64,000 nucleotides of DNA from Macrostomum hystrix (Eukaryota > Animalia > Platyhelminthes). The notes below the pieces were generated by a model. That model was not told the DNA's origin, did no database searches, and saw nothing but the letters and a program-made list of their open reading frames with translations. Shown here in pieces: positions 11,400 through 38,939 of this stretch (the stretch's first letter is position 1; each line of letters begins with the position of its first letter). The translations under genes and the position numbers were made by a program. The DNA lies in the NCBI GenBank assembly GCA_950097015.1, contig CATNEN010000039.1, positions 13,640,001-13,704,000 on the forward strand. The letters are read 5' to 3'.

Positions 11400-12340
11400 A
11401 AAGGATGGGATCTTGGTTTGGGATGGGATCGGTTGGTTTGGGATGGGATCGGTTGGTTTGGGATGGGATCGGTTGGTTTGGGATGGAATAGGATGGAATG
11501 GAATGTGATGGGATGGGATGGGATGGGATGGGATGGGATGGAATGTGATGGGATGGGATGGGATAGGATGGGATGGAATGGGATGGAATGGGATGTGATG
11601 GGATGGGATGGGATGGGATGGAATGTGATGGGATGGGATGGGATAGGATGGGATGGAATGGGATGGGATGGGATGTGATGGAATGTGATGGGATGGGATG
11701 GGATGGGATGGGATGGAATGGAATGTGATGGGATGGGATGGGATGGGATGGAATGTGATGGGATGGGATGGGATAGGATGGGATGGAATGGGATGGGATG
11801 GGATGTGATGGAATAAGATCGCATGGCGCGCGATAGGATTGGATGGTGTGGGATGGGATTGGATGGTGTGGGATGGGATTGGATGGTGTGGGATGGGATT
11901 GGATGGTGTGGGATGGGATTGGATGGAATGGGATGGGATGGGATGGGATGGAATAGGATGGCATGGGATAGGATGGAATAGGATGGCATGGGATGGGATG
12001 GGATGAGATGGGATGGGATGGGGTGGGATGGGGTGGGATGGAATGGGATGGGATGGGATGGGATGGAATGGGATGGGATGGAATGGAATGGGACGGGATG
12101 GGATGGGATGGGATGGAATGGGATGGGAAGGGTTAGGATGGGATGGGACGGTATGGAATGGAATGGGATGGGATGGGATGCAATGGAATGGAATGGGATG
12201 GGATGGAATGGGATCGAATGGCGCGCGATTGGATTGGATGTTGTGGGACGGGATTGGATGTTGTGGGATGGGATGGGATGGGAACGGATGATATGGGATG
12301 GGATGGGATGAGATTGGATGGGATGGGAGAGATGGGGTGA
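11400..12340. repeat. (GGGAT)n pentanucleotide microsatellite
   Basis: Directly visible. Confidence 0.93.
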
Positions 12341-13084
12341 GTTGATAATATCTATATGCAGATTAAATTCTATAATTAAAACTCCCTTGCCCTTTTACGC
12401 AATTTTCTAGCTGTCAGTGGAACTGAAATCAATGCACCGTTTTCTTCTTTCAAGTTCACCAGTCCAATGCCCGTGTAAACCGGGTTCAGAGCAGCCCTCT
12501 ATCGACTAAAGAGTAACGCGGTTTTCGTTGGCCGAGGCACTTTATCGTCGGACTTACTCAGACATTATTATCTATTAGCTCTGTGTTGTTATGAATTATT
12601 GAACATTAGTTCGATTCTGTGAGACGAAACCCGAGCTCTGACTATGTCTGTACAAGCTTGGCTGTTACTTTTTTGTGGCAGAACCATTTTCGTCATTCCG
12701 CATTTGACAGGTCTGTCAGCTGTCTCTACCTTCGTATCCTCAGCTTCATTTCCTCAGCTTCTAGAGCTTCGCGAAGGCGCGGACACGTCAATGAGTTAAT
12801 GAATTCGAAATTTCCTTGTTTTAAACCATCACTGATGCCATGGGGGATTTTTTGGGAAAACTAAAATAAGAAGCTGAATTATACGGATTGGGGAGAAGAA
12901 GCTAGATACCTGGCTGACAATGAGATTGTCTGGCTAAGCCAGCTTTTCGGCTGAAGAAAACTAAAGTCGACACTTATTTGAAGGGAAATGGGATTACTGA
13001 ATTTGGCGAGTTTAAAGAGATAAGACGAGATTAAACTGGGAAGCAAATTGAATGGGAATGATTTTTTCGAGGCTGGTTAGTATG

Positions 13085-15212
13085 ATGGGATGGGATGGGA
13101 TCAAATAGGATAGAATATGATAGGATAGGATAGGATGGGATATAATATGATAGGATAGGATGGGATAGGATAGGATGGGATAGGATGGGATAGTATGGGA
13201 TAGGATGGGATAGGATAGGATAGGAAAGAATGGGATAGAATATGATAGGATAGGATAGGATGGGATAGAATGGGATAGAATGGGATAGGATGGGATGGGA
13301 TCGGATAGGATAGAATATGATAGGATAGGATAGGATGGGATGGGATAGAATGGGATAGGATAGGATGGGATAGGATAGGGTGGGATAGAATGGGATAGGA
13401 TGGGATAGGATGGGATAGGATGGGATAGGATAGGATAGGATGGGATAGAATGGGATAGGATAGGATAGGATGGGATAGAATATGATAGGATAGGACAGGA
13501 TGGGATAGAATGGGATAGGATGGGATAGGATAGGATAGGATAGAATGGGATGGGATTGGATGGGATCGGATGGGGTAGGATGGGATAGAATATGATAGGA
13601 TAGGATAGGATAGGATGGGATAGAATGGGATAGGATGGGATAGGATAGGGTAGGATAGGATAGAATGGGATAGGATGGGTTAGGATGGGATAGGATTGGA
13701 TAGGATGGGATAGAATGGGATAGAATGGGATAGGATGGGATGGGATCAGATAGGATAGAATATGATAGGATAGGATAGGATGGGATAGAATGGTATAGGA
13801 TGGGATAGGATGGGATAGGATAGGATTGGATGGGATAGGATGGGATAGAATGGTATCGGATGGGATGGGATCGGATGGTGAAGGATGGGATAGGATGGGA
13901 TAGGATGGGATAGGATAGGATGGGATAGAATGGGATAGGATAGGATAGGATGGGATAGAATATGATAGGATAGGATAGGATGGGATAGAATGGGATAGGA
14001 TGGGATAGGATAGGATATGATGGGATAGGATAGGATAGGATAGGATAGAATGGGATTGGATTGGATGGGATCGGATGGGGTAGGATGGGATAGGATGGGA
14101 TAGGATGGGATAGGATAGGATGGGATAGAATGGGATAGGATAGGATGGGATAGGATAGGATGGGATAGAATGGGATAGGATAGGATAGGATGGGATAGAA
14201 TGGGATAGGATAGGATGGGATAGGATAGGATGGGATGGGATAGGATGGGATATGATGGGATAGGATAGGATAGGATGGGATAGGATGGGATAGGATAGGA
14301 TAGGATGGGATAGAATGGGATAGAATGGGATAGGATGGGATGGGATCGGATAGGATAGAATATGATAGGATAGGATAGGATGGGATAGAATGGTTTAGGA
14401 TGGGATAGGATGGGATAGGATGGGATAGGATGGGATAGGATGGGATAGAATGGTATGGGATGGGATGGGATCGGATGGGGAAGGATGGGATAGGATGGGA
14501 TAGGATGGGATAGGATAGGATGGGATGGAATGGGATAGGATAGGATAGGATGGGATAGAATGGGATAGGATGAGATAGGATGGGATAGAATGGGATAGGA
14601 TGAGATAAGATGGGATAGGATAGGATAGGATGGGATAGAATGTGATAGGATGGGATGGGATCGGATGGGGTAGGATGGGATAGGATGGGTTAGGATGGAA
14701 TAGGATGGGATATGATGGGATGGGATTGGATGGGATACGATAAGATGGGATAGGATGGGATGACATGGGATCTGGTGGGTAGGATGTGGTAGGGTGGGAT
14801 GGGATTGTGTCGGATAGGATTGGATGGGATTGGATGGGATGGGATGTGAGGGGATGGGATTGATTGGGATGGTGGGATGGGATCGGATGGGATGGGGTGT
14901 GGGATGGGATTGAATGAGATGGGATCGGATGGTATAGGATTGGGGTGGTATGGGATGGGATAGGATGGGATGGGATGTAGGATGGGATGGGATAGGATGG
15001 GATATGATGGGATCGGATGGGATGGGATTGGATGAGATGGGATTGGATGGGATGGGATGTGGGATGGGATGGGATGGGATGGAATAGGATGGGATCAGAT
15101 GGGATGGGACGGGATGGGATGGGATGGGACGGGATGGGATCGGATGGGATGGGATCGGATGGTGTGGGATGGGATCGGATTGGATGGGATGGATGTGAAT
15201 TGGATGGGATTG
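13085..15212. repeat. (GGATA/GGATG)n pentanucleotide microsatellite
   Basis: Directly visible. Confidence 0.93.
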
Positions 15213-16976
15213 ATTAAGTAATCGAAGCTTCCAAAAGAGTACAAATTGAGTGCACTAGCCTATATGACACAGAAGTACTTCATAGTACCAATCAATCAAC
15301 AAAGCCATTTTTTATTTCGCATCGATTTTGAGATCGAGATTCGACTTCGATTTTGACATTTAAAGACTCTCATCGAATACAAATTAATGGAATAATAATT
15401 AATTAGTTTTTTAGAATTACATTCTTAGTGATATTTGTCATTACAATTACCAATAAACTAATTGTTTATAGACAAATTACGACAACCGTGGCGTTTGTAC
15501 CAAATTTTAAATATCAGCAGACATCACACATTACTACTAATAAAAGTAATCTTTTTATACAAAAAACGGTATTACCCACGTTTAAATGACTGTTCAAAAA
15601 ATAGCCAACTCCAAATTAGCAATGAAATTCTTTGAAATTTTGTCGACACTAAAGGTTGAAGTGTATTTTAATGACGTTAATAACAATGATTTTTATGACG
15701 GTTGTACTTTTAAGCATAGTGTAACAATCTTTTGTCTTTTCGTGAAAAAAACACAGCATGAAATAGGTAAAAATAACTGTAGATCTTACATTAATTTGAA
15801 ATTTAATGCAATTGTGAGTTTGAAATTGAACCAAGAGTTTATAGTACATGCGTGCCCTGCTGATTTTTACCGTTTTTTATGTTCGGATCCTTAAAACTGT
15901 ATAGCTGCTGGCAACAACAAACAAACATTGTTAAAAAATGCATATTTCAAACTGTCCAACCCGCCGTGTAAGATCTAGCTGGAAGGTGAAAGAAAATAAA
16001 ATATGGGTATTTGAGAAGCTGCATGTATTTTTTTTATTGCTCCGTGTGTATATTTCTTCAAAAGAACTTTTAAATTTTAAGCTCAGTTTGAAGTTGGTTA
16101 GGAAATATATGCGTCAATTGTATTAGCTTATCTAACACAGCAGCCGTGCAAAATAAAAGAGAACTTACATGTACAATGGGATGCTTCTGTCACTAGAAAA
16201 AACTCCCAGCAAACGAGAGAGAGTAATATTTTCAACTGCAAAAGAGCGAATACCTGTAATACCGAACCATAACTTCACATCTCGAGTGCTTCTAAATTCG
16301 CTTGTTTTGTCTAGTATGACAGTGGCCATTGTCACGGACAAACTGGGCATTCTAGACTCTGAGAAACACGAAGTAAAACACACAAATAAAAGTTATATAA
16401 AAAATAAAAACGAAAAGTAATAGTTTAGGAAACATTAACTCGACTCCCTGTGTCATTGTCGTTTCTTTTTACTCAGTTTACATCGTAGCTCCTTTTTATA
16501 GCGTATCGACAATGTTACAAAACAGGACTGAATAGACACTTTCGTTCTCTACTTTTAAATATATGCAACTTTAGTTACTGTACATTTCAAAGCAAGAAAA
16601 ATGATAACGGTATATATCATGTGTTTTTCAATTTTGCCAAAACGATATAATAGAGTTTAAATGTCAACAAAATCCCACCGTAACTCAGTAAGGTATTAGA
16701 ATTTGTTTAAACGAGTTACAATTTTTAACAGAAGTCATTTAAACATTCTTTAATAACTTATTATTAACTTATTATATATATTGCGCGGTGTGTGTATGAC
16801 CTTTACATTTCTTTACATTTCGACTGACCGCCTCTTGTAGACTAGTCCTAGCCCTGTCGCTAAGCCGCCGGAGACCAGATTAACCATCGTGCTCTAAAAA
16901 TATTTCTCAGCTTTTTTCATTTCTATTTAGTTGTAAATATTATTTCTAGAAGCGAAGCAAGCTTGCTTAAATAAAA

Positions 16977-21284: not shown

Positions 21285-24200
21285 ATGCTAACTAGCAGCA
21301 TTAGTGGCAACAATGGTGAGAAGTCAGGCACATCAACTAATGTGAGCTCAAACAGCAATCATCATCATCAGCGCCATCATCATAATCAGACCCTGCGCCG
21401 TCTAGGCTGCCAGTGTTCGAATCCGCCATCAGCCAATGGCTCCGGGCTGGTTCGCTGTCAAAATTGTTCAGATTGGTTTCATAGGGACTGCGTGGCGCAC
21501 TTACTCGCTGCTGGAAACAACACAGATGGCGACTATGCATTTTGCTGTTCCGCCTGCTCCAGGCAGACAGCTAGTCCGGGTAGGTGTCTTTTTTCACCCC
21601 AGCCGATGCTGGTAACACTAAGAAATTAAGTGTTCCAATTCGAGCTCCAAAATTGTATTCCTTAGAAGCAGATTCGAACTCCCGACCTCTAATCCAAACT
21701 CCTAAACTTTATCCACTGGGCTGCAAGTTCGTAACATTCCCGACACTCTTAATCTAAAATCCCGATGCCCTGACTAAGATCTTAGATCCCTGACAGTCTG
21801 ACATTATCAATCTAAGACCCCTGATATTATCAATCTAAGACCCCTGACATTATCAATCTAAGACCACTGATATTATTAATCTAAGACCCCTGAAATTATC
21901 AATCTAAGACTCCTGACATTATCAATCTAAGACCCCTGATATTATCAATCTAAGACCCCTGATATTATCAATCTAAGACCACTGATATTATCAATCTAAG
22001 ACCCCTGAAATTATCAATCTAAGACTCCTGAAATTATCAATCTAAGTCCCCTGAAATTATCAATCTAAGACCCCTGAAATTATCAATCTAAGACCCCTGA
22101 TATTATCAATCTAAGACCCCTGAAATTATCAAGCTATGATTATTGACATTATCAATCTGAGACTGCCAAAATTTTCAATTTATGACCCTAACATTATTAA
22201 TCTAAGACCCCTGATATTATCAATCTGAGACCCCTGACATTTCAATCTAAGACCCCTGATATTATCAATCTGAGACCGCTGACATTTCAATCTAGGACCC
22301 CTGACATTATCAATCTAAGATTATTGACATTATCAATCTAAGACCCCTGACATTGTCAATCTAAGATCCCGATTCCCATTGCAACGTCAATCAAAGATGC
22401 CTTGACAAATCGCTGTATTCATGTTCACAGGCACACCAGAGGAGCATCGCTATCCCTATCAGCAGAAGCAGTATCAGCCGCCTCAACAGTTGCAGCTGAA
22501 TCTGCAGCAACAGCAGCAGCATTCCCAGCTACTGTCGCCCCAGAAGCTGTCCTCGCCTACAAAGCTATCCGGAGCGGCATCGTTTCACGAGACTTCCAGT
22601 GCCACGTACGGCACTGGCGGTGGCGGTCGCGGCGGACGGCACACCTCAGGCTCTAGAAAGATTAGTTTCTTGCCTCGCACCGACTCTGTTGTTCAGCAAC
22701 AGCAGCAATTAAGCAAGCCGTCAACTAGCAAAGCAGTTGTTAGCAGTGACAGTAAGATACAGTTTTTCGTTTTTTCCAATCCAGAAAAAAAGATGAAATT
22801 TATTTTTTAAATCCGTCCTGCAACTAAAACGCAGGCAAAGAATCTGTTAGCAACCGATTGGAAGCTTCTAGTAACCGACCGTCTACTAAGCCAGCGGTCG
22901 CCGATCAGAGCGACGCAGCTGACTCGCCAAAGATTGACGTCATCGCTGAAATATTTAGCGACACAACTCCGGGACACTCTGAGCACAAATGGCCCGATAT
23001 GAACTGCAGATTGTGCCTCACTGGATCGCCCGAGCCACAGGTTAGTTGGCACCCTATTATTTATTAGTCATTCTCTAAGATAAGCCGGTTGCTTCACTAC
23101 AGTTATCAGGGGTTTAAACAACCGGAACTTCAGATTCACTCACTAACTCGCTCGCTAAATCAATAAAACAGTAATACTTACATAATAGTTAGTCAATTAC
23201 TCGTTCACTCACTCACTCACTCACTCACTCACTCACTTAGTCACTCAATCACACAATCACTGACTTACTTATTTACTCATTCATTCACACACTCACTCAC
23301 TCAGTAACTCACTCAATCACTCAATCACTCACTCAATCACTCACTCACTCACTCACTCACTCACTCACTCACTCACTCACTCAGTCAATTACTCACTCAA
23401 TCACCCACTCACTCATACAGTTCTCCACCTGATTAGCTCGAGGCAAGTTAGTTACAGGGGTTACTTCAATCTTCGAAAAATGGTTTGATTTTGGGTTCAA
23501 AATACTCAGATACAAAAGTCAGAGAGAGTTCCACAAGAAATTAAGCTGGAGGACTCTCTCAGTCCAAAATATTTACTTTTGAAATTAATTAGGGCTAGAT
23601 CTAATCTACCTACTTTGATCACAGTATTAGGTCGAGGTTCGGTTTTCTACGGGTATTAAATTGAGTTAAATGAACTTAACGGTGAAAAAATATGAGCTTA
23701 TAGAGCTCATACTAACCGAACGCTTAAACGTTAGAAAGCTGCATGTTTATTTGAACGATTTAACTGTAAAAAAGGTAAAAAACACTTGCAATTGTTGAGC
23801 CGAACTGGCAACATTTGTTACATTGATCACCCATAAAAATCGTTTAAAGACATTGTTTAGATAAAAAGAAAACAAAAAACGCGTGGCAGTGCAAAACTAC
23901 GAGCTAATGGAACGCTTAAACGTTAGAGAGCTAATTATTCATTTCAAGGACACAACTTTGGGGCAATAACACTTGCAGAATGTTTTATGGACGCAGAGTT
24001 TCATCATTTTTTACTAAAAGTATCACGAGCTGCATATCCAAACCTTTGTGGTTGATTTTCTTTACTAAACTACTTAAAATGCTTTCTTTCAAGCTACCCG
24101 ATAAAAAGCTCACATCAAATGCTAACAGATAAGCTCAAGGTAGCACCTCAAGTTAATCCTGTAGCCATACAAGCAGTTAAGTATTGTTTAAAAGTTATTA

Positions 24201-27200
24201 CGTTTTCAAGTGATAAAAGTCATTTGGGAAAAAGGGGCTGACTGCCTTGCTTTGGGCTTAATGGGGCATTTTCTTCTTGCGCAGCTCGTTCATAAACCGA
24301 TCTTTGACCTTTCTCCATCCTCGGAGCTTCAAAATTGGCTCGGCAATTAGAAGTTCGTCTATTTCGCGTTTTCCCGGTACTCTACCATTCATGCGCTTAA
24401 GCATCTCGTTTTGATGCCGATCGAATGCTGCTCGCTCTTCGGCGGACCATTTTACGAATGGCATGGAAATTTTAGCATTCTGTTTTTTCTCGGTCACCTT
24501 GGTAATCTTTGCAGCAGGCACATAATCAGCATCACATAAGTCGTCTGACGATTCATCAAGATCAACTTTTCGGCCAGCGCGAGTCTTTAGGACCAAAGGA
24601 GCACCGCGAAAGTCCATTTCAGTTTCCATTTCTTCTTCATCACTGCTTTCGTCTTTGTCGGAAGCGCCGTCGTCGTCAGCCGGAGCATCGGGAATGTCGT
24701 CCATTGAAATCGAGTCGAGTGTTTTCCCTCGAATGCTCACAATCTTTCCTGAATCGATCGCAAGAAGGAGCTTGCTGGTCTTCGCTAATTCTAGATAGTC
24801 TTTCGTGAAAGTTGGTAAAACTGGCGGTGAACTGACATAGTATGTCCCATGTGGTCGCACAGCAATTTTAAATCACGATCGTTCAAGTCCATCAGCTGAC
24901 AAACTGTAGCTACGTACTTTCTTAGCTTGGTAGCGTTGATGCGTATTGGCTCCTTCAAATCCGGAACAAGTTGCAGAATTTTAGTCCGAGTCCTGTATGG
25001 GGACAGATGCTTGCATTCGGTCGACAGATTTGCGAAGACAAACGGATTTTTGTCCGAGTCCTGTATGGGGACAGATGCTTGCATTCGGTCGACAGATTTG
25101 CGAAGACAAACGGATTTTTGTCCGAGTCCTGTATGGTGACAGATGCTTGCATTCGGTCGACAGATTTGCGAAGACAAACTGATTTTTGTCCGAGTTTCCG
25201 CGGAAGTCGATTAGCTTCCCTAGTAACACACTTCGTCGCGGCAACGTCGCGTAAACGTCGCAAAGTTACGTCGCGGGAAGGGGTGATATGTCGCGCCACG
25301 CGACGTCGCGTTAACGTCGTTGCGCGACGTCGCGCTGAGGTCATCGCGTGACCATTACGCGACCACTATTAATACTGTATTCACAGATAATTTCTTCGTA
25401 CTTTTTGTAATTTGCCATGCATACGTACACACAACATACGTATACATACGTAACGCGATTGAAATTCCGATCCAATTAGTGTAAAGCAGTTTTTAAGCCG
25501 GTTTTAAGCCGTTAGCAGTTTTTAAATGCTGAAATTCACATCAGGAAACGCCAAGACATGACAGAGGCAAAACTTAACGATCAGGCTGCATCTGTGTGCA
25601 GCATTTTCTTTTATTCTCTGCGCGCGATCTGGGATAAAGAACTGGAATCGAATTGTGCGGCGCGTTTCGATAGAGACTGAACGAGTGAAACCCGTATAAC
25701 AATTTAACGTAGTTTAAGTAAAATGACAGAGCGAGTAAAATTATTGAGAGAAAGCAAAAATGACAGTAAAATACGGAGAGATTAGGAGATTAAAATGGAG
25801 ATTATATTGCTGAACATAATAGATCCATAGATTATATGTATGGATCATAGAGGGAACGACGCTGAGCTAAATTAAATAGCGTGTAACGTGTACAAAAAGC
25901 GAGAATTGACAAAGCGCGTAAAATCGCTGAGTTTTACAGGCTGATTTGATTTAGCATAAAATGCAAAGCTTAAAAGTAAAAATCGAATTCACTTACAAGC
26001 GCTTCTGCATCAGCAGGATTGAAGTTCAGATGCTCGACGAGCTGCCCCAGATCATCCAGAGCGCATGGTAGATCAACAGGCAGACTGGCAGCAGGCGCGT
26101 TCTTTTGCGCTGCCATTGCAGACACTGTGCGCTCAATGCGTTCCGCGTACGGCCGTAGGGAGGCCAGCTCCCTTAAAACAATCCTTTCGAACGCTGCAAA
26201 GACGAAAGTTATTGACTGCCAGATCACAATGCTCCGTAAATTTTTTTTACGCAAAAATGGCTGCACAGTTCCAGACTTTTAAACCAGGACACCCTGGATT
26301 AGGATACCGCAGCTTTAAAATTTCACAGTTTTTTGGTCATTTTGACTACTCACTTGAGCCAGTTGCAGAATCTCGCACAACCGAACCTGCCCCACTTGTG
26401 GCTGGTTGAAATGGAGAAGCGTGACTGGGCTCGTCAGCAGCAGCTGCAGTTGGCGTCTGCTGATGTGAATCATCCTGTCGCAGCTGGGATGCCGTGAACA
26501 ACGGAACTGTACGGCAGACCGGCATTGTTCCTGATGGCCGAGGTGTGTCGTCTAATTCGGCTGTAGAAAGAGAAGTTTTGCAGATGAGTGCGTGCTGTAT
26601 GTACTGTGATAAATGCGAGTCAAACCTGACATTGCTCATACTTACGCAATCGCGGAAATGGTGGCGGCAGATCGTCGTCGCTGCTGCTTGAATCCGAGTC
26701 CAGTATATTGGCTGTCCTCTTTGCCTTCGTACTCAGCTGATTTCTGGCGGTCTCCTGTGGTTCGTCAATAAATCTGGCAGGTGCAGCGCGCTTTCTGCTT
26801 GTCGCTGCCTCTGCATCAGTCGATAATTCATCGGCGCCGCCTGACGCACGAGCGAGTCGGCGTCGAGCTGTGCACTCGTCCGTTTTCGTCGACAAAATCT
26901 CGCAGTTGTGCAGCTCCCAGTCATCATTTGGCGCTAAATGCTTTGATCTGAATTTTGTTGCCTTTGTCATGCTTGTCGGCGGCCAACGGCAGCGCGTCCG
27001 GCCCACAAGCCAAACCTCGCTGACGTACTCGACGGAACCGTCCGCAAATTTGACAACGCAAAAGCTTGCCTGCAACAAAATTAAAGCAGGAATCTAAAGA
27101 AACATGTGGTGAGGACAATCTTGTCGGCGACAGGCAAACCATAAAACTTTCTCTTCACCTCTGTAATTCTTAATGTGTAGAGGTCAGCAAAATCTAAATT

Positions 27201-30200
27201 CGACACATGGTGGATGTCCAGCTGTTCGGATTTAACAGGGTATGCGAAGAATGACCTCTTTGGTTTTGAATCGGCGACACACCAAGCGGGACTCAATCTC
27301 CACCTGCAGGACATTCACGATTCTGTAGTAGCAGCTGTCTGAGCATTCAATGAAGGAATCATTTACGGCACTAACAGTCTGAATCTGATCGAAATGATCG
27401 CCCTGTACTGCTCAATGCACGAAGGGGGCATATTGGGAAGCGGGCCTGACCAATGCAGACCAATGAATTTTGTAGACTTGGCGGCTGATCGATTCACGTT
27501 GTCACTTTTTTCTTCGTGAATTCTATTGCAAACTTGCTCGAATGGTAAGTTGCTGGTTCTTAGCTTTGCCTTGATGGATTGCATATTGTTTTCGAACTTG
27601 AAAGCAGAAAACTGTCAAGGGAGCCGTTGTGCTTGACATAAGACGGAAGATGGAGCAGGCAATGCACGTTGTGGCTCATGAAATTGTCGCCGTAAATTTT
27701 CGCGCAGTCGGACACAAACATCCGAAGGAGTTCTGCAGCATAGTCCGCCAGCTGAATGCACCTTTCAGGATTACACAGGCAGAATATAGCGACGCTCAGC
27801 AGCAAAAAATGCTTGTACAGCTTGGAGGGAAGCACCGATTTCAGCACAACCTTTCCTGAATACAACAGGAATGAGCGGAATTCAGTCGCTTTCCAACGCC
27901 GGCATTCACCCAGTGGTCTCGGGTCTCGAGCAAACTCCGATGTAATGAAATCGGCAACATACAGGATGTGACCAGAAATTTGCAAAACGTGACTATTAGA
28001 CAGTCGACTTGGCAGTTGACCGCCAAGCCATTGCAACAGTAGCCGCTTTATCACCCCAAGACATACAAGATGCATATAGTCTAGGGGAAAAGCTGTAATC
28101 ATATCAATCCTCAAAGCCGTCAGGGGGCTTGTTCCGGTATGGTGCTCCTCATCAATCTGTTGCCTGAACGAGTCATCCGTGCGCAATGGTGCATCAACGT
28201 CTTCCAGAATTACGTAGCCAACGTATCTACCATAAGCAGTACACTGCTCGCATGAGGAATATCCGCCGTGTCCCTTGATGCATTTAATGAATGCACGAGC
28301 TCGAGCGTCGCATATGAACTTGATGTCGAACCGGTCTTCAAGACCTTGCAGCTCAGCAACCAGATCCTTCAAATATTCCTCAAGAGGTGGCTTTTGCTCT
28401 CCACAGTACAGACCTATTATAGCTGGCGGGCCTTGTCCAATCAGCAATCGTTTAAAGCATCAAAAACTCAAACGAAACTATATCGTTTCAGTTGTTTGCT
28501 TTGAAATCTGCTGCAGAGCTGCAGAGAGGTAACGCTTTTGGATTCGAATTGAGAGACGTGGAGCAGTACGTTTTAACAAACGCATGCCACGAAAGAAATA
28601 ACTCCTATTAATAATTCACTCAAGCAAATGAATTGTGTTTTAAAACCACTTATCATTTGCTAAATCTAACACGTATTGTAACATAGTGAATTATAATACG
28701 TTCCTCTGGAAAAGTCATTTGTAAAGTACTTTTAGGACTTAGCACCCGCAAACAATTAAAGGTGTCATAAATTAAGTAGCACAGCCTAGGTTTGGGGCTA
28801 TATTCGGATCATCTAAGTTTGTTGCTACACATTTAATAATACCAACCGTTTTAATTACACTAAACATTTTTGTTCATGCACAAAATTATTAAAACTGCGA
28901 TGCATTTTTCCGTGGCAATGCCAATTTCAATCGCCATCTAATAAATCTAGAGGCAATACGTATTGAAGATGGCATACACTGTCTAATTAAAGGTATAACA
29001 GGTAGATGTAGTCAAATTCCAATGTTTTTTGATGCTTTGATTTCCGACGTTTTCGCGACGTTTTCGCGACGTCAAAGTCTTACGAAAAAAGGCCGCGACT
29101 TTCGCGACCTACCGCGACGCTTACGCGACGTTGCCGCGACGAAGTGTGCTACTAGGGCTTGTCAATTAGGCGAACAATGTCAGTTGGAATAATTACTGGA
29201 ACTATCTGTCCGTGTTTGCCGACCACCTGTACTAGCAGCATGCTCTTCGAAAGCTGCACCTCAAGTGGAGTTAGATTAAGATTTTCAGCGTCAGTCGGAT
29301 CACCAGCAGCGGCATGTACTTTGGCACTTTGGTACATTGCCAGATGCTTTTTGAAAACTTCAGATGCTCGTCTCTTATTAAGTAATGATAGCCTGAAAGC
29401 AATAAGCTCAGCTAGATTTCGCCACTCTTCTTTGTTTGTGATTTTGGCGTCAGAGAAGAATCCAATTTCTTTTTTTAAGTAGGTGTTCAACAACATTAGG
29501 TCGGCAGTTAGCGGCAACACCTCAGGAACCGCAGCCTTGCGAACTTTCAGAGGCTGAAGAGCTGACGATAAGATTGATTTCATCCAACAGGAGTCGTGGA
29601 CCACAACATATTCTTTGTATTGTTTCGACGCAGATTTATTGCCTGCTTTCAATGCTGTTACCATGCAGATCTCTGCACAACACTTCAGGCTGTACCCTAT
29701 TTTAAGTACAAGACTTGGAATGCCGAATCGTTCATTTTGTGTAGCAGCCGGGTTTTTGAAGCCACACACATTTCGAGTAGCGATGACGCGAAAATCAAAA
29801 TATCTAGCCTCGAGAGCGGCTGACAGTCAGATTTGGCTCGCTTGTTACAATTCGCAACTCTTCTAAAAACCGAGCCATTTCTCGCATTTTGGTAGTGCAA
29901 AGACTCGCTCGCCTCTGCCAGAAATGTGCACCTCCCACCACTAGAGCCCCAGATTCATAATGGCCGCATCATTTCTAGCAATTAGCTTTTTGTCATCGCT
30001 GTTCATTCGTTCGACGACTTCTAAAAAATCGGCTGGATACTTGTTCGGAAGTAGTGCTGCAGAGACTATAGCTTTGCCAGCTGCCACAAATAACTCGTGT
30101 TTCTTAGCGCCATCCTCATAATCGACCGGTCGTAATTTACAATTGTGACAATGCTTATAGAGCTCACGAGCACGAAAAAAACCAAAGCAGAATTTGCTAG

Positions 30201-33200
30201 GAAGACAGCTGGAAGACACCTCGGTAGAACCTTCATCTCGGATGACAATAAGTTCTCCTTGTTTGGTTTTTGATAAGACTTGAATATTGTGCTCGAAGTC
30301 GCCCAGCAGACGTAGCTTGGTCATGGCCCTCTTATACTCTTGAGAAGACTTCGGATGGGCAGCAGCCGCAGCAACAGCCATCTCATTTTCGTGGCGGCAA
30401 AGTAGGTGGTCCCATGGACGAGAATAGAGGAAACCACTATATTGGAACGAATGTTTCTTTTTCACCTTTTTATCGGCATCAGCAGCCACGGATTCATCGC
30501 CAACATCCTCATCTCTTCGAACATTCAGCGCATCAACAATGCCAGAATTAGGGTCATCAACAAGTTCGCCATCTTGAAGTTCGCGAAAAAAGCTGCTCAC
30601 AGCATTGACGTCCAAAAAGTCTGTCTCGATGAACTCATACACATCGTTGCCAACATTAGGAGCAGTCACAGAACCAGGATCAGTTATCCCAAACAGGGAG
30701 CAGCCGCTTTAGTCACCGAGCCAGGAGCAGCCGCTGCAGTCTCTAAGCCAGGAGCAGCCACTGCAGTCTCGAAGCCAGGAGCAGCCGCTGCAGTCGCCAA
30801 GCCAGGAGCAGCCGCTACAGTCGCCAAGCCAGACGGAGCCGGTGCAGTCTCTAAGACAAGAGCAGCCGCTACAGTCTCTAAGCCAGGAGCAGCCGCTGCA
30901 GTCTCTAAGCCAGGAGCAGCCGCTACAGTCTCTAAGCCAGGAGCCGCCGCTACAGTCTCTAAGCCAGGAGCCGCCGCTACAGTCTCTAAGCCAGGAGCAG
31001 CCGCTGCAGTCTCTAAGCCAGGAGCAGCCGCTGCAGTCTCTAAGCCAGGAGCAGCCGCTGCAGTCTCTAAGCCAGGAGCAGCCGCTGCAGTCTCTAAGCC
31101 AGGAGCAGCCGCTGCAGTCTCTAAGCCAGGAGCAGCCGCTGCAGTCTCTAAGCCAGGAGCAGCCGCTGCAGTCTCTAAGCCAAGAGCAGCCGCTGCAGTC
31201 TCTAAGCCAGGAGCAGCCGCTGCAGTCTCTAAGCCAGGAGCAGCCGCTGCAGTTGCCAAGCCAGGAGCAGCCGCTGCAGTCTCTAAGCCAAGAGCAGCCG
31301 CTGCAGTCGCCAAGCCAGGAGCAGTCGCCAAGCCAGGAGCAGCCGCTGCAGTCTCGAAGCCAAGAGCAGCCGCTGCAGTCTCTAAGCCAGGAGCAGCCGC
31401 TGCAGTCGCCAAGCCAGGAGCAGCAGCTGCAGTCGACGTGTCAACTCCTGCACTCTTGTCAGTCTTCTTCGACACTGCCTTGCCTTTCGTACTTCTCTGA
31501 ACCTGGTAGGAATAATTCGTGAAAGTTACAAATGACTTTAGAATTATCGTAAAAGTACTTTTGCACTCAGCTCAGCCTAATCAGACTGCGATGAATTTCA
31601 CTCTGATCTGACTCATATCGGGCTGCAGGACTACATCGAGGTTGTCATCGCACTCAGCTCGACCTAATCCCAATTCATTCAGTTCACTCTGATCCGAAAG
31701 CCCAGCTCGTGTCGGACTGCAGGACTACATCGAGGCTGTCATCGCATTCACATGGACCTTATCATATTCAAGCATAGCGCCATAAACAAGTGTTATACGA
31801 AAGTACAATGAAAGTGTAAAGAAACGGCAGCGCTCCACTTGGCGCTCTGAATTTTCCGGAACATTCAGCTGGATGGACGTATCCGTCTCTAACGTGGCTT
31901 CGGTACAGGCAGCTGCTTGGAATGACGCAAAAGAGTTGGCTGCAGTCACCGAGCTAGAAGCATCAGCGGCAGTCGCCGATCCAAGAGCAGCTGTTACAGT
32001 CTCTAAGCCAGGAGCAGCCGCTGCTGCAGTCGCTGAGAGTGTTATCCTGCTCTGCTCTGGTGCTTGCACTGAATTTTGTGATCTTTTTGTGTCTTTAAAT
32101 TGTAAGACGTCTGAAATACTTGGCAGTTGACTGATGATGCTATCAATGTGTTTGAAGGCATTTTTTTACTTTTTAAATCTGGCGTGCTCTTTGCTTTGCA
32201 AGTGTGCATTGAAGTCGGTAAACTTTCCGCTACAATTTTCGCATTGTCGCATTGTAGGAAGTTTTAAGCCGGGACCCATATCGTCGTTTCTTTCCTGAAG
32301 CATTTGCTTGTCTTGAGCCTTACAAAGCTCGATGAAATATGTTGTACCGAATAGACTGATGTCCTGGTAAACGATCGGTCGATATATCTTTTTCATGTCT
32401 GATATTACGATGGCTGGCGGCGATAACTTTAAGTCGCTAAAGGCGGATAGATTTTCTTTTCCACGGTATGCACCTCGAAAGCAAGTGATTGGCAAAACAA
32501 TAATACAAAGCTCTTTTGCCTTCTGAAGGATGTCTTTTACACAGTCAGCTTTGCATTCCGCAAGCAAATCATCGACATCTACGTCTTCTGAGTCGGTATT
32601 GACCTTGCTGCCAAAAGTCGTTACCACAGCATCGACCTATACAAAATGTAAGCAGTAGTAGTAATAAGCACTCCATTGTGAAATGTTTCCCAAGAAATTT
32701 CACGATTGGTTTTTCAAAATCAAATCCGTACCTCTTTTGAAAAGAAATGATCAACAATGACACCACAACTCTGCGTAAGAAAACTTTCCAGATGAGCAGA
32801 GCATGATGATCCAGACTTGTTCAAAACGAATACTCGTTTTCCATATAAAAGGCCTTGAGGAGCGCCGTCGCTACGTCCAACCTAGCAAAAAACAGGTTTC
32901 ATACTTTATATGCTGAATGACTTCTCTAACAAAATGACAATGGATGACGCTCAAAGTAATGTATTGCAATAATGCGTATCCAAAACGAAAATACATATAT
33001 TGACAATGAACTAAAAGCCTTGTAATTGCAAAACGTCCCTGTAATTAGGTAAAAAAGGACCTCAGACCGAGTTGGATACGACAAGTGAAAAACCTCACGA
33101 TTCACGCATGTAAATTTATATATGGACTTAATAGTACGGGTGTTTCATAAATTCACTCTTATAAAGAATTACCACTGCTGTCGGGCTGGAAGGAATAGCT

Positions 33201-36200
33201 CGTTCATCGAGGTTGTAATCGAACTCAGCTCGACCTTATCCCAATTCATTGAGTTCACTCTGATCTGAAAGCCCAGCTCGTGTCGGACTGCAGGACTACA
33301 CCGAGGCTGTCATCGCATTCACATGGATAATCTCATTTTCAAGCATAGTGCTAAAAGTCTTATATGTAAGCTAAAGTAACTTGAATTGAAATACAATTTA
33401 GTTTGTCTTTGAAAAAACGGTTCACTATGTTAGAAGGTGTTTGTTGCTTATTGTTTTCTTAAGTGACCTAAATGTTGAGCTAGTGACTTTACCAGCTATT
33501 TTTTTGCAAATGCTATTCTTAGAACTGCCAAGCCAAGCAAGTGATCCGTTTTTAAAGACAGCGAATGAGGCAGTCTATTTCATTGTCATCATACGAGCGT
33601 AGAATGCAATTTTACTTACTGCAATTGGAGTGAAATTTGCGCAGCACCCTTTCTGGAAAGTTTTTCCTTGGCTCCCATGTCGCATGTTTTCTAAAGATTT
33701 TTATGTACATTTGGGAATTTCTCAGAGCAAACACAATATCATTTTTACACTAGATTTATTAAGTGGATATTTCTTACCTTTTGCAGCCTTCCCAGTGAAC
33801 TAGGTACTCGTAGTCACCGTTTGTCTTGCATTTTCGACATTTTAGAACGCTCAAAACGTTGTGCAACTTCTTCGACTTTCTCGTGGGCATAGCTCAAGGA
33901 AGCGTCAAGAAGAGCAGAACGCTTTCTGACTTAGTTCTTCTAGTTCTTCTGACTTCTGACTCGCTGATACAGCTTCTTAGAGCAGTAGGAAATAAAACGG
34001 CTTTAAAATGACACTTCTTAACTTCGTAAGAAGGAACCTTTGACTTTGCGTGAGTGGGATTATATCGAGGGCTTGCATCGAGGGGCTGATTGGAGAAAGT
34101 TGGACTCCTCTCGCTTTCTGTTGGGGTGTCGGGGTTGGGGTATTGTACACTGACCCTGTACACGCAGCAGTTCTGCTGCAATTCTATTGGCTGACAAACA
34201 AGGCTCTTGTTCTCACTCTTCAGGATAACATCGAGGCTGATTCTCAGTAGATATTGAAACTCACTCAATTGCCTGTCTGCAGGATAACATCGAGGCTGAT
34301 TCACTCAGTACTCAATGAAAGCTTTTTGAATGGCTTTTAAGTTGGGCATTCTAATCCTGGGATACTGAGATTTCGTTTTCTAGAATCCGTGGAATGCTGC
34401 TGTTCTGGATTTTTTGGGGATTTTTTTGAAAAATTGAGCTTTGATATTGATTTATTAATGAGAGTTAAGTAGAGATTGTATACAGTACAGCTCAAAGAAG
34501 TTCGCAAGCTTTCTTTTGTCTCACATTTCTGAGCTTAGATTTTATTTCCTTAGTCTTTAGTTTTTGTTTTTAGCTGATGAATCCACAGTTTTTGTGGCTG
34601 ATTCAACAAATTTATTTGTTAATGAACAAGAAAAGTATCTAGCTTTGAGTGACAATCGAGCATTGCTCACCAATAAGTATCATATTTCACTTAGTGCAGG
34701 AAGATACACCGCTGGCATCAGTTGATTCATAGTTGTGCTAATTTCTTGCAATATTTATTCTTGGAGCTCATTAAAGGCAGGGTGTGGCAGTAATGATACT
34801 TAATGACGTCTAAATCCCTTTTTGCATTTCACCATACTCACTCAAATCGGCAAAAACAGGGTACACTCGATTCTCGAAGTGAGTAGAAATTCCTAAGTTT
34901 TACAGGAAATCGATGGGGGGTTAGGTCGAGGGGACAAAAAGCCAAAAAGCCCGGTAACACTTTAGAAACTTTTTAAGCTTCATAAATTGTTTAGAAGTAG
35001 TCAACGAGGCATTTTGGGTCGCAATTCTTTATGTCAATTCAATTGGAGCCCGAAAAAAAGGACCTCAACCTAAATCCTCGAGCTAAAAAAATCTCGAGCT
35101 AGCCGTGATTCTCAACAGGCAGAGTATCGACCTAATCGGGTGGAGACTAACACACTCACTCACTCACTCAATCACTCACTCAGTAACTCACTTAGTCACT
35201 CAGTAACTCACTTAGTCACTCGATCACACAATCACTCACTCACTCACTTACTCAATCACTCACTCAATCACTCACTCAAGCACCCACTCAGTCACTCACT
35301 CACTTACTCAGTCAATTACTCACTCAGTCAATTACTCACTCAATCACCCACTCAATCACTCATTTACTCTTTCAATATTTTTGTTACTCGACCTCTTACT
35401 TACTCGCTCACTTCTCAAACTGTAAATCACTTCTTAAAATATTTTAATCACTTACTCAATCACTAATTAACTCACTTATCTATTTGTCGCCCCACTCGCT
35501 AACTCTATTCCTGACGAGTTTTTACTTGTACTTTCTTGCCGGAAGATTACAAAAAAACACAAGCTTGTTGGGACCCGGTTTAGTATAAGGTACTAACCAG
35601 AGCCTACTAAAAGTAGTATGCATCGCGACCCTATAAAATACAGGATTTATTAAGACAGCCGCTGCGGCGCACTAGTCTATTGCAAGACTTGGACAGCGGC
35701 ACGCCCTACCAGTCCTATTACACTAGCGCCCCGTCTGCTGGTGAAGACGCAGCTCATACTACTGTTAGCGACGGTGCGTCAGCCGGCGACGATAATCCAA
35801 TGGAGCTTTGCGAACAAGACGATCTAGTTGAACAGCCAGCGGAGCATCAATCAGCGGCTGATCCCGTTGTTGACGATGGTCGAGAAGCTCTAGCTAGGCA
35901 GCAGCTAAGCCGTCGTATTGCTGGAGTGCAGCAGCAGCAGCAGCAGCATCAGCCGCGTAGGCATATCTGGTCTGGCGTGGCCGACACTCAGGTTGGCGAT
36001 TTCCGACTGCGAGCCTACCCGGTCAGCGGGCCCGACTGCGACAATCCGCGCCGAATGGCAAGCCACTTCCCGTCCGATAGGCGGCTAATGCTGAAGGGTC
36101 GACTAGCCAGACATGTGTGCTTTGACTATCTAAAACAGATGCAACGAGTTGGCACTAGGGACATTCTAGTGCTCAGCTGCGTACCTGATGGACAGGTGAG

Positions 36201-38939
36201 AGGCTTTACTTCTTTATGATATTCACTATCATTAGCTCGCTCACTCACTCAGTTATCCATTCACTCACTCACTCACTCAGTTATCAATTCACTCACTCAC
36301 CTCAGTTATTCATTCACTCACTCACTCACTCAGTTATCTACTCACTCACTCAGTTATCCATTCACTCACTCACTCACTCAGTTATCCATTCACTCATTCA
36401 CTCACTCAGTTATCTATTCACCCATTCACTCACTCAGTTATCCATTCACTCAGTTATCCATTCACTCACTCACTCACTCAGTTATCCATTCACTCACTCA
36501 CTCACTCAGTTATCTATTCACTCACTCACTCAGTTATCCATTCACTCACTCACTCACTCAGTTATCCATTCACTCACTCACTCACTCAGTTATCCATTCA
36601 CTCATTCACTCACTCAGTTATCTATTCACTCATTCACTCACTCAGTTATCCATTCACTCACTCACTCACTCAGTAATCCATTCACTCATTCACTCACTCA
36701 GTTATCTATTCACTCATTCACTCACTCAGTTATCCATTCACTCACTCACCTAAGTTATCCATTCACTCACTCACTCACTCAGTTATCCATTCACTCACTC
36801 ACTCACTTAGTTATCTATTCATTCACTCACTCACTCACCTCAGTTATCCATTCACTCACTCACTCACTTAGTTATCTATTCACTCACTCACTCACCTCAG
36901 TTATCCATTCACTCACTCACTCACTTAGTTATCTATTCATTCACTCACTCACTCACCTCAGTTATCCATTCACTCACTCACTCACTTAGTTATCTATTCA
37001 TTCACTCACTCACTCACTCAGTTATCCATTCACTCACTCACTCACTTAGTTATCTATTCATTCACTCACTCACGCACTCACTCACTCAGTTATCCATTCG
37101 CTCACTCACTCACTCAGTTATCCATTCACTCACTCACCTCAGTTATCCATTCACTCACTCACTCACTCAGTTATCTTTTCACTCACTCACTCAGTTATCC
37201 ATTCACTCACTCACTCACTCAGTTATCCATTCACTCACTCACTCACTCAGTTATCTATTCACTCACTCACTCAGTTATCCATTCACTCACTCACTCACTC
37301 AGTTATCTATTCATTCACTCACTCACTCAGTTATCTATTCACTCACTCACTCACTCAGTTATATATTCACTCATTCACTCACTCAGTTATCCATTCACTC
37401 ACTCACTCACTCAGTTATCCATTCACTCACTCACTCACTCAGTTATCCATTCACTCACTCACTCAGTTATCCACTCACTCACTCACTCACTCAGTTATCC
37501 ATTCACTCACTCACTCACTCAGTTATCCATTCACTCACTCACTTAGTTATCCATTCACTCACTCACTCACTCAGTTATCCATTCACTCACTTACTCAGTT
37601 ATCCATTCGCTCACTCACTCACTTAGTTATCCATTCACTCACTCACTAATCTAAGCATTCACTCGCCTTCTAGTCTATGCACTCACTCATTCACTAATAT
37701 TTACAATTGCTGATTTATTCAGACTAGCACGCTGAATCGATCAATGCCTCTCTGAACAAGCCAGTCACTTTTACATTTGAATCTCCCGCGGGCTTCAGGG
37801 TCACCTAGATACATTGTATGAAACCCTGACTTTCTCCGCAGCCTTACAAACAGTCCTACCTTGGCTTGCACCAGGCCCTGGTAGTGAAGGACATTGTTGC
37901 CGTGTGCGTTAATAAGCCGCCTCACGTGAAAGATTTCTACATCTACGCTTTGCCAGCAAAGGCGCCTGTTCCGTCCGTTCTACTGCCGTTTCATGGACCG
38001 GGTATGATCTTAAAAAGCAATTGCATACTGCTGTTTCCTAGCTTGACTAAGTAGTGCGTTTTGCAATGCTTTCTTATTCACCAATTTATAATTTGCCCAG
38101 GTCTAAGCGACGAAAGGCCCCACCTTCTGTTGGCAATCTTGGTGAAATCTCGCACTGGAGAACATCATCATCAGCAGCAGCAGCAGCAGAATCAGCGTCC
38201 CTCGGCAGCCTCCCATCCCGCCAATCCTTCGCCTCCGCTCTCTCCGTCGGAAGTCCCCAGCCCGACGCCTAGCAGCAGCGAAGATTACGATAATGGGCAG
38301 CTGTTGAACCCTCAACCGACGTTGGTGAAACAGCAGCAGCAGCAGCCGCCGCCGCCACCGCTAACTGCTAGCAGAAACGAAACTCCACCGCCTCCGCCGC
38401 CGCCACCGCCTCCCCCACCGCCGCCCCCACCACCGCCACCGCCGCCGTCGCAGCAGCAGCAGGAGGTTCTCTCCGTTGCGGCCGACCTTCCAGTTGCGGC
38501 TTATTCAACGTCAATGTCTGCAGCAGATTATTTGACTGCAGTGGACGATACATCACCAGTCCCGAGCTATTGGTCAAACTCAGTCGCGCCGATGATGGAG
38601 TCTCAGCAGCAGCAGCAGCAGCACATTGATGCCTACAGCACGGCTTGGCCCAGTGTTGAAGGCTACATAACTCAGCCGCAGCCAGGTCAGATGATGCCAA
38701 TGTCCTACGGAGCACCTGCTGAGTTTTCACCAATGGGCTACATGCAACAGCAGCAGCCCATGCATCATCAAATTCCTCATCATCAGCCATATGCGCCGCC
38801 GCATCCTCACTTTGCTCCTCGCCGGCCATTTGGATTTCGCGGCGGTCGCGGCGGTCCAGGCAGAGGAGGCGCCGGCTTTGGACCGGGTTTTATGCGCGGC
38901 GGCCGGCCCGGTGGTCGGGGTCGGTTTGCACCGTATTGA
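21285..38939 (+). CDS. DIDO1/PHF3/pps-family PHD-finger + SPOC domain protein (~790 aa); exons 21285-21579, 22431-22751, 22835-23040, 35644-36195, 37842-38001, 38101-38939
   Basis: PHD finger CQC...CQNCSDWFHRDC...CCSAC. DTTPGHSEHKWPDMNCRLC resembles the DIDO/PHF3 DTTxxHxxHLFDLNCKIC motif. SPOC: IWSG...AYPVSG...GRL...DYL...HVKDFYI...PVPSVLLPFHGPG. All five GT-AG junctions are phase-compatible (2373 nt total). Pro/Gln-rich and RGG C-terminus. Confidence 0.85.
21790..22370. repeat. 23-bp intronic minisatellite (CTAAGACCCCTGAYATTATCAAT)n
   Basis: Directly visible. Confidence 0.92.
23205..23415. repeat. (TCAC)n microsatellite, left flank of the YR element
   Basis: Directly visible; continues at 35150-35470 on the other side of the insertion. 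Confidence 0.85.
24258..25217 (-). pseudogene. C-terminal half of tyrosine recombinase plus acidic linker and Myb/trihelix-like tail
   Basis: NATKLRKYVAT (HxxR box equivalent), LCDHMGHTMSVHRQFY (H and catalytic Y), ELAKTSKLLLAIDSGK...GKTLDSI, and tail KWSAEE...VPGKREI...RGWRKVKDRFMN. Disrupted by a 68-bp triplication and a frameshift at ~24792. Confidence 0.8.
24984..25195. repeat. 68-bp tandem triplication inside the YR coding region
   Basis: GTCCGAGT recurs at 24984, 25052, 25120 and 25188 with near-identical intervening sequence. Confidence 0.92.
25970..27078 (-). pseudogene. EnSpm second ORF (DUF4806-type protein), fragmented/spliced
   Basis: FCVVKFADGSVEYVSEVWL...CRWPP...PNDDW at the N-terminus and LPCALDDLGQLVEHL later are typical of the accessory ORF of animal EnSpm elements. 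Broken over several frames. Confidence 0.6.
27081..28447 (-). pseudogene. EnSpm/CACTA transposase, N-terminally truncated and frameshifted
   Basis: Motifs CDARARAFIKCIKGHGGYSSCEQC, FPLDYMHLVCLGV, WKATEFRSFLLY, HNVHCLLHL. SAFKFEN continues in another frame near 27600. Confidence 0.85.
29158..30690 (-). pseudogene. N-terminal Zn-binding region and first half of the tyrosine recombinase
   Basis: HLLCRHENE...LRLLGDFEHN...GELIVIR...CLPSKFCFGFF...LYKHCHNC; PSLVLKIGYSLKCCA; LPLTADL; LNKRRASE (catalytic R box); VGKHGQIVPVIIP (catalytic K). Matches the metazoan YR protein family often found with SET domains. Stops/frameshifts around 29770-29945. Confidence 0.8.
30700..31440 (-). repeat. 27-bp coding tandem repeat (TAAAAPGLE)n, linker in the YR element protein
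   Basis: (AAGCCAGGAGCAGCCGCTGCAGTCTCT)n. ORF 31475-30684 is preceded by an acceptor CAG|GTT at ~31504. One further unit occurs at ~31985-32035. Confidence 0.85.
31618..31777. repeat. Internal direct repeat, copy A (pairs with 33181-33348)
   Basis: ~145-160 bp at roughly 90% identity (by eye) to 33181-33348. Contains GCTCGACCTAATC, which matches the element terminus. Confidence 0.85.
32070..32881 (-). pseudogene. DBF4/ASK/Chiffon-like module (BRCT-like motif N, motif M, motif C zinc finger); exons 32881-32732 and 32636 onward
   Basis: Spliced (GT-AG, phase 0, 95-bp intron) translation: LLYGKRVFVL...LESFLTQSCGVIVDHFFSKE|VDAVVTT...DILQKAKELCIIV (motif N), LKLSPPAIVISDMKKIYRPIVY (motif M), CENCSGKFTDFNAHLQSKEHARF (DBF4-type Zn finger). 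An in-frame TAA at 32168-32166 is followed by the expected KNAFKHIDSIISQLP. Confidence 0.8.
33181..33348. repeat. Internal direct repeat, copy B (pairs with 31618-31777)
   Basis: CATCGAGGTTGTAATCGAACTCAGCTCGACCTTATCCCAATTCATTGAGTTCACTCTGATCTGAAAGCCCAGCTCGTGTCGGACTGCAGGACTAC... aligns to copy A. Confidence 0.85.
33620..33890 (-). CDS. Chromodomain split over two small exons (33890-33778, 33690-33620); probable N-terminus of the YR element protein
   Basis: ATG at 33890. MPTRKSKKLHNVLSVLKCRKCKTNGDYEYLVHWEGCK|RKHATWEPRKNFPERVLRKF has the EYLVxWxG and TWEPxxN chromodomain signatures. GT-AG junction in phase 2. Confidence 0.72.
35150..35470. repeat. (TCAC)n degenerate microsatellite, right flank of the YR element
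   Basis: Directly visible. Confidence 0.85.
36235..37695. repeat. (TCAC)n-based intronic minisatellite with AGTTATCCAT spacer
   Basis: Directly visible. Confidence 0.92.

Follow-up and report, generated by a model that had tools for sequence, protein, structure and literature searches.

Positions 23422-35146 of a 64-kb window of the Macrostomum hystrix genome (C39:13640001-13704000) are occupied by a tyrosine-recombinase (YR) DNA element, which reads on the minus strand. The window is the whole stretch of DNA that was analyzed, and window positions count from its first letter; genome-wide searches covered an assembly of 220 Mb in 42 contigs. On the minus strand the parts of the element follow one another in the order proposed by a first-pass annotation, made from the sequence alone: chromodomain exons, DBF4-like exons, an alanine-rich repeat, a zinc-binding region, the YR domain, and a C-terminal tail. 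Our preferred reading, which we hold with modest confidence, is that this is a dead single copy of a Crypton-like, YR-only transposon that carried a paralog of DBF4 when it inserted. The first-pass annotation went further and proposed that the ancestral element encoded one fusion protein. The YR element and the chromodomain head on its recombinase withstand scrutiny, but the fusion with DBF4 is unproven, and the splice phases at that join do not match.

Ends and target site of the element

The element is bounded by two inverted arms: CTCCACCTGATTAGCTCGA at 23423-23441 on the plus strand, at the 3' end, and CTCCACCCGATTAGGTCGA at 35127-35145 on the minus strand, at the 5' end. The 3' arm is a putative recombinase half-site, and the two arms carry identical bases at 17 of 19 positions. 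The block had been described as having 20-bp inverted termini; the inverted ends at 23422-35146 hold, with arms of 19 bp. A degenerate form of the terminal 19-mer matched exactly only at the two ends of the element in the 220-Mb genome; when as many as three mismatches were allowed, it gave 87 matches genome-wide, compared with 83 for a reversed control. An inverted pair alike at 17 of 19 positions within 14.5 kb is not rare in itself, and others are present. We count the arms as element ends because both of them abut junctions of unique DNA with a (TCAC)n/(CACT)n microsatellite, not because such a pair is rare. The left half of this split microsatellite, the target site, lies at 23205-23415 (Tandem Repeats Finder, TRF; period 4, 52.8 copies, 211 bp) and the right half at 35153-35362 (TRF; 210 bp), and the two halves have the same orientation.

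Apart from the 19-bp arms, a search for long terminal repeats, direct or inverted, found none, and no reverse transcriptase was detected in open reading frame (ORF) and Pfam scans of the 7.8 kb that lie outside a nested transposon (25218-29157, described below). As in Cryptons, a YR is present without reverse transcriptase, RNase H, or methyltransferase genes and without long terminal repeats (LTRs) or split direct repeats.

The arms are built on the motif GATTAG(G/C)TCGA, which recurs within ~230 bp of both ends. Its core, TTAG[GC]TCGA, has seven matches in the 64-kb window, six of which fall within the 7.8 kb that remain of the element when the nested insertion is set aside: two are terminal, three are subterminal (23627, 34921, and 35078), and one is internal (31659). 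The copy at 23627 belongs to the 3' noncoding region (23442-24257, minus strand), and the 5' noncoding region (33891-35126, minus strand) has motif copies at 34921, 35078, and 35094. The last ~100 bp of the 5' region recur, with 74 to 77% identity, as the outermost part of a relic on contig C24 (C24:1277446-1279400). The C24 relic begins at the same arm, beside a different microsatellite, and it also has a recombinase C terminus and the repeated end motif near its end. Because the relic combines the same 5' end, the motif array, and the YR C terminus, the 5' end can be tied to the recombinase.

The recombinase gene and its decay

All parts of the gene lie on the minus strand. Two chromodomain exons (33620-33890) stand at its head, identified from splice sites, Pfam, and alignment: exon 1 at 33890-33778 and exon 2 at 33690-33620, separated by an 87-nucleotide intron. 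The ATG is at 33890, the exon 1 donor is GTAAGA, and exon 2 has the acceptor TCTTTAG and the donor GTAAGT. Exon 1 alone scored 18.8 bits against Pfam Chromo (cutoff, 25.1), and exon 2 (WEPRKNFPERVLRKFHSNC) is 50% identical to the Chromo-positive N terminus (Pfam, 29.2 bits) of P0001 (BOX15_Mlig016835g4), a protein of Macrostomum lignano. Assignment of these exons to the recombinase gene is supported at the level of predicted proteins, because both P0001 and a sister family on contig C15 encode a chromodomain, the zinc region, the YR, and the tail.

The alanine-rich exon (30697-31502) starts at a phase-0 acceptor at 31502 and continues into a 27-bp repeat of 27.7 copies at 30697-31434 (TRF). 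The first-pass annotation joined this exon to the next ORF by a 1-nucleotide frameshift; the shift is needed in the alanine frame, but an alternative open frame passes into the zinc ORF with one stop codon instead. In the zinc region itself (29827-30708), which was delimited by family consensus and alignment, the second module is kept (CLPSKFCFGFF...HCHNCKL), and in the first finger F and S replace the family's two cysteines, so that both Cys ligands are lost. The YR domain comprises an N-terminal part (29158-29826; LLNKRRASE, VVGKHGQIVPV) and a C-terminal part placed by alignment (24794-25217; TKLRKYVATV, DHMGHTMSVHRQFY), and the pieces are 38 to 39% identical to intact ORFs on contigs C15 and C7. 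The catalytic residues previously read from the sequence (NKRRASE, GKHG, TKLR, MGH, and FY) are all present, in order, and aligned with the family consensus. Downstream is a tail (24261-24860; ELAKTSKLLLAIDSGK ... VKWSAEERAAF ...), recognized by tblastn to P0001 and P0006 and conserved across the family; a Pfam search of the tail ORF in which Myb, SANT, MADF, and trihelix domains were sought gave no match.

The copy is dead. Its YR domain is split by the nested transposon, and removal of that insertion together with one CTT restores a continuous YR frame (...LIDKLIDFRGNSDKNQFVFANL...). Adjoining the nested insertion, a 68-bp unit is repeated 3.2 times at 24978-25195 with 98% identity; this tandem repeat in the recombinase coding sequence, a very recent duplication, breaks the YR frame. 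There are at least three frameshifts, a compensating pair at ~29945 and ~29820 and another at ~24794, through which alone the tail is reached from the YR frame; the alanine-frame reading adds a fourth at ~30700. To these lesions are added the lost zinc ligands and a stop codon in the DBF4 module.

The YR fold was tested on a relative, P0004, in place of the broken window copy. An AlphaFold model made from 21 sequences (mean predicted local distance difference test score, pLDDT, 75.9) had XerH, XerD, Cre, XerA, and topoisomerase IB as its best Foldseek matches, with probability 1.0, and it aligned with an archaeal Xer over 169 residues (VIA-align; Z, 10.9; root mean square deviation, 3.5 Å). 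Pfam Phage_integrase matched 3 of the 21 relatives, with PF00589 above its cutoff in P0030, and a comparison of the family profile with PDB sequences gave no recombinase match. The modeled structure of P0004 supports a YR fold for the family, and the objection that the first-pass annotation had foreseen, failure to support such a fold, does not arise.

Relatives of the recombinase

The best relative of the recombinase ORFs is an M. lignano protein that is 93% identical to the ORF on C15. Beyond M. lignano, family relatives occur in many fish, oysters, scallops, sea cucumber, and acorn worm, where the gene models are automatic predictions. Throughout the family the zinc region, YR, and tail form a constant core and the heads vary: SET, SET plus protein kinase, kinase alone, FHA, or chromodomain. 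In one fish model the match is instead to HECT, at the C terminus (residues 712 to 786 of 787). The SET heads bear out the remark in the first-pass annotation that this YR family is commonly seen with SET domains. Since relatives elsewhere carry SET, kinase, FHA, and chromodomain heads, the heads are exchangeable in the YR family.

In M. hystrix itself, the sister family has two dispersed copies, at C15:152967-160149 and C7:5016736-5022617, which are 88 to 97% identical, and the C15 locus has the same chromodomain head exons. Two dispersed copies fit mobility. The arrangement of chromodomain, zinc region, YR, and tail, found intact in the sister family here and in M. lignano, is a real architecture.

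More distant YR loci were also observed. A third kind of zinc-YR element lies ~3.5 kb downstream of the C24 relic, at C24:1282859-1284909; its ORFs contain KYCGKMLTKISRHYKTSH, FYNRRRSSE, GKKGRSVPIL, and GHDITVHRQYY and are 27% identical to the window YR. Three loci, C7:3631370, C13:905404, and C33:3361791, matched the window YR with identical scores and 25% identity, in frames of 916 to 919 codons, and look like a young multicopy YR family. Their 916-residue ORFs were considered as carriers of a PWWP domain; this was rejected, as Pfam gave no match.

A DBF4 paralog inside the element

The DBF4 module consists of two exons on the minus strand. The first (32732-32881) encodes the beginning of motif N; it starts and ends in phase 0, lacks an ATG, and was identified by BLASTP to the corresponding host exon. 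The second (31840-32636, with an approximate 3' limit; Pfam and BLASTP) encodes the rest of the BRCT-like motif N, motif M (PPAIVISDMKKIYRPIV), the motif C zinc finger (CENCSGKFTDFNAHLQSKEH), and an alanine-rich tail. The claim of DBF4-like exons with one in-frame stop proved correct. The Pfam family zf-DBF (PF07535; cutoff, 24.8) scored 30.1 bits on the ORF and 51.1 bits when the sequence was read through the TAA at 32168-32166, which lies inside the zinc finger, and the motif C ligands C-x2-C ... H-x5-H are present. Motifs N, M, and C align to host DBF4: by BLASTP, motif N matched its host exon at E 2e-5 and 35% identity, and motifs M and C matched theirs at E 7e-10 and 31% identity. Pfam gave no match to motif N or motif M alone, and the protein-atlas neighbors of the DBF4 piece are all DBF4 clusters.

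Genome-wide, zf-DBF has two matches, one to this module and one to the 614-codon frame of the host gene on C7. Host DBF4 (C7:3785654-3787804, minus strand) is made up of an N-motif exon and one of 614 codons, which encodes motifs M and C and an alanine-rich tail; the gene is followed by long Pro/Ser/Leu/Phe-rich microsatellite-like stretches. In the module, a 95-nucleotide GT-AG intron follows the FFSKE position, and the open frame of the host N exon crosses a GT at the matching point (...FFSNQ/V), which fits an intron at the same position in the two sequences. Compared as protein with the genome, the DBF4 piece matched only itself, and no other copy was found. A phmmer search of 1.84 billion representative proteins returned no close kin, the two matches obtained being spurious repeat proteins; none of eight window ORFs had an exact counterpart in the protein collection; and scans of Joint Genome Institute (JGI) metagenome contigs with the DBF4 piece and with the YR piece found nothing.

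Open stretches of 156 and 146 codons persist in the module. Because it is only 31 to 35% identical to host DBF4 and yet its frames are still open, the module would have been constrained for a long time and would have decayed recently. On this comparison it is a real paralog, once functional, lying in sense orientation inside the element.

The module stands between two direct repeats, R_A (33205-33370) and R_B (31563-31803), which were defined on the minus strand by repeat comparison. R_A (33370-33205) and R_B (31803-31634) are 88.8% identical over 170 bp, and each is a short tandem array of ~88-bp units bearing the end motif GATTAGGTCGAGCTGAG. They are the sole two copies genome-wide, and a candidate assignment of R_A and R_B to a family of miniature inverted-repeat transposable elements was rejected on that ground. 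Within the tail ORF of DBF4, 86 bp at 31939-32024 are ~80% like three alanine-repeat units beyond R_B. Between the 5' end and the first exon of the C24 relic there is a single array without interruption, made of 2.5 units of 93 bp; a single array is therefore ancestral, with DBF4 placed within or beside it. This placement fits either capture of DBF4 at the site-like array of the element itself or its insertion into tandemly repeated DNA.

Carriage of DBF4 and alternative explanations

We consider it somewhat probable that DBF4 belonged to the mobile unit. A number of observations weigh against this view, or against mobility of the element as a whole. No target-site duplication or direct repeat is readable at the element ends. 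When the whole block was used to search the genome as DNA, only the nested transposon and the flanking microsatellite were matched; the two unique parts matched only themselves, the C24 end, and, weakly, alanine repeats. Outside the nested insertion the element is thus single-copy at the DNA level. Its family comprises one copy and one relic, where dispersed copies would mark a mobile Crypton, and no empty site was found in this genome; the first-pass annotation had named a single-copy region with no empty site as speaking against its own proposal, and this copy is formally such a region. Its further expectation, that other copies with these termini would keep the chromodomain and DBF4 parts, fails for the C24 relic, which is the only relative with the same 5' end and lacks both. 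With a single copy, carriage of DBF4 during transposition cannot rest on a comparison of copies, and the placement of the module is compatible with acquisition before or after this copy landed. Two protein searches returned ~70 YR relatives, none of which has zf-DBF, and no further DBF4-bearing element was found in this genome, in public proteins, or in the JGI metagenome contigs. The long ORF of the alanine repeat is no coding evidence, because the repeat is open in several frames on both strands.

Several of these points would also be expected if the DBF4 block were a secondary insertion in place. On that explanation, which is a serious one but which we think less probable, a fragment or relic of a host DBF4 paralog entered the R array of a resident, probably dead element through repair or segmental duplication, and it never moved or contributed protein. 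Direct repeats such as R_A and R_B, bounding DBF4, are what DNA placed in a tandem array should show, and the uninterrupted array of the C24 relic, the mismatched splice phases, and the lack of any YR relative with zf-DBF in the searches all agree with it. However, the genome holds no source copy, and the module is too diverged from host DBF4 for a recent copy. It also lies in gene orientation and in exactly the variable head-to-linker region, and it has an alanine-repeat unit in common with the downstream exon.

Sequence reads were compared with the part of the element at 31530-35146. Over this part, both the source run and another run from its study match the window without differences. Two wastewater RNA libraries gave contigs that are 88 to 97% identical to the chromodomain, DBF4, and upstream parts (window 31538-34912). 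These contigs are unspliced and follow the genomic sequence, across the chromodomain intron too, which is a further point against our reading; for the same reason they are silent on splicing. They show that a close relative has the chromodomain, DBF4, and upstream parts, and the source of the libraries suggests a closely related flatworm living in the wastewater habitat. The contigs, coming from another sample, place the locus in that relative as well, and together with the single-copy state they could be taken to indicate a decaying host gene, a once-domesticated chromodomain-DBF4-YR fusion at a fixed locus, in place of a transposon copy. We regard this as highly improbable, given the inverted terminal arms with repeated end motifs, the split microsatellite, and the relic with the same end on another contig; the many disabling lesions and the nested transposon, moreover, indicate no current constraint.

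The splice sites confirm the phase mismatch reported by the first-pass annotation at the join between chromodomain and DBF4. Chromodomain exon 2 ends in phase 1, and both the DBF4 N exon and the alanine-rich exon (acceptor 31502) begin in phase 0, so the present sequence contains no in-frame splice from the chromodomain exons to either one; the DBF4 N exon, in addition, has a strong acceptor and no start codon. Both points count against our reading, though one extra indel could account for the mismatch in a copy that has many frameshifts. They bear most directly on a narrower version of that reading, included within it and not additive to it, in which one ancestral polypeptide ran from the chromodomain through DBF4, alanine repeat, zinc region, and YR to the tail and brought Cdc7 kinase to the recombinase or to marked chromatin. 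All the parts are collinear on one strand, and the DBF4 exon, its tail, and the alanine-rich exon lie in one frame with few stops. The N exon, with a strong phase-0 acceptor and no ATG, needs an upstream exon, and relatives fuse SET, kinase, FHA, or chromodomain heads to the same YR. We nevertheless find a single polypeptide doubtful: the phases clash at the chromodomain-to-DBF4 join, for the DBF4-to-alanine join the one available donor is weak (GTGGAG near 31840), no spliced reads were seen, the copy is single and dead, and the fusions in relatives are known from automatic gene models.

Nested transposon and flanking repeats

The nested transposon (25218-29157) is a 3.9-kb multicopy element with 44-bp inverted ends that begin CCCTAGTAACACAC..., subterminal CGCGACG repeats, and a CTT target duplication (25215-25217 and 29158-29160). 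It contains a 295-residue ORF (27560-28447, minus strand) with no Pfam match, and copies that are 95 to 98% identical occur on C1 (16361930-16373871) and C38 (6795369-6796084). Its earlier designation as a CACTA element has to be dropped, as its ends do not begin with CACTA.

The surroundings of the element are rich in repeats. A 23-bp tandem repeat (GACCCCTGACATTATCAATCTAA, 16 copies) occupies window positions 22000-22370, ~0.8 kb to the left of the microsatellite, and the 155 bp immediately to the right of the element have more than 300 genome matches at 85 to 88% identity. Window positions 6000-16000, 36000-38000, and 54000-58000 have extreme GC skew (0.5 to 0.66, or -0.5) and are probably arrays of CACT-like or similar strand-biased satellites.

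Possible mechanism and implications

In Macrostomum, the basic form of the gene encodes a chromodomain, a disordered linker, the zinc region, the YR, and the conserved tail. In the mechanism that we infer, the element would be excised as a circle on which the arms lie opposite one another with a short spacer between them, in the manner of a lox or att core site. The recombinase would then insert the circle into a target, in this case the (CACT)n microsatellite. The DBF4 paralog, in gene orientation within the linker or intron region, would have been part of the element at insertion. Its expression would have come from the transcription unit of the element, with the product either attached to the recombinase as an N-terminal extension or made separately, and the whole element would have decayed after it inserted.

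A stronger proposal is that a YR-transposon lineage carried its own Cdc7 activator, a complete DBF4 module under selection beside a chromodomain and gained at an array of the element's own site motifs. We think this unlikely, and state it for its consequences. If it were true, the element might draw the replication kinase to its own DNA or to marked chromatin, and this would couple excision, integration, or copying of the circle to origin firing; S-phase timing and origin targeting are speculation. In fission yeast, HP1/Swi6 recruits Dfp1 in a comparable way. Even on our preferred reading, if DBF4 did travel with the element, a kinase activator would join the SET, kinase, FHA, and chromodomain heads of the family, suggesting that these elements read or write chromatin and cell cycle state. 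We know of no other transposon that carries a regulator of replication-origin firing, and if DBF4 traveled with the element this would be the first such case known to us. Apart from DBF4, the locus provides a clear anatomy for an animal YR-only family, with inverted half-site ends, repeated end motifs, and a microsatellite target, and this anatomy differs from the published description of animal Cryptons. The value of one dead copy is as a lead for comparative work in Macrostomum.

Comparison with known systems

Among known systems, P0001 and the sister genes on C15 are close: their domains follow in the same order, the chromodomain head and the tail are homologous, and identity over the zinc, YR, and tail parts is 36 to 42%. 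Where these genes have a repeated disordered linker, the element has DBF4 and the alanine repeat; the sister family also differs in its ends, in not carrying the GATTAGGTCGA motif, and in its intact ORFs. More distant relatives (P0011, P0018, P0022, P0043, P0044, and P0054) have the same core of zinc region, YR, and tail, at 28 to 35% identity to the C15 protein, under variable chromatin or phospho-signaling heads; none of these automatic gene models has zf-DBF.

Crypton DNA transposons were reportedly described by Goodwin in 2003. Like them, the element is a eukaryotic DNA element whose sole enzyme is a YR, without reverse transcriptase or LTR; movement through an excised circle is proposed for both, and nonautonomous or deleted derivatives exist, represented here by the C24 relic. 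Animal CryptonA and CryptonI elements have been described as lacking a C-terminal domain and terminal repeats (PMC3212892, Kojima and Jurka 2011), whereas in the family studied here a zinc region and a conserved tail accompany the YR, and the ends have 19-bp inverted arms and repeated motifs. Pfam DUF3504, found in CryptonA-type recombinases, had no match at E ≤ 0.01 in any of the 21 relatives or in the window pieces. The Repbase Crypton groups are A, F, I, S, and V (PMC5753468). We describe the element as Crypton-like in mechanism, and it is the published description together with DUF3504, not a Repbase comparison, that sets it apart from CryptonA and CryptonI. A literature search for Cryptons together with SET, chromodomain, or DBF4 found nothing relevant.

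With cellular DBF4/Dfp1, the regulatory subunit of Cdc7 kinase, the module has in common motifs N (BRCT-like), M, and C (CCHH), in that order, and the same intron after FFSxx. It differs in its 31 to 35% identity within the motifs, in having no start codon of its own and a stop in the zinc finger, and in its location inside a transposon. DNA transposons are known to capture host genes, as in Pack-MULEs, CACTA elements, and Helitrons. The present case resembles these in that a host-derived segment, introns included, lies inside a DNA transposon. Unlike such captures, which are usually recent fragments of extant genes in many copies, the DBF4 module diverged long ago, retains all its motifs, and has been seen a single time.

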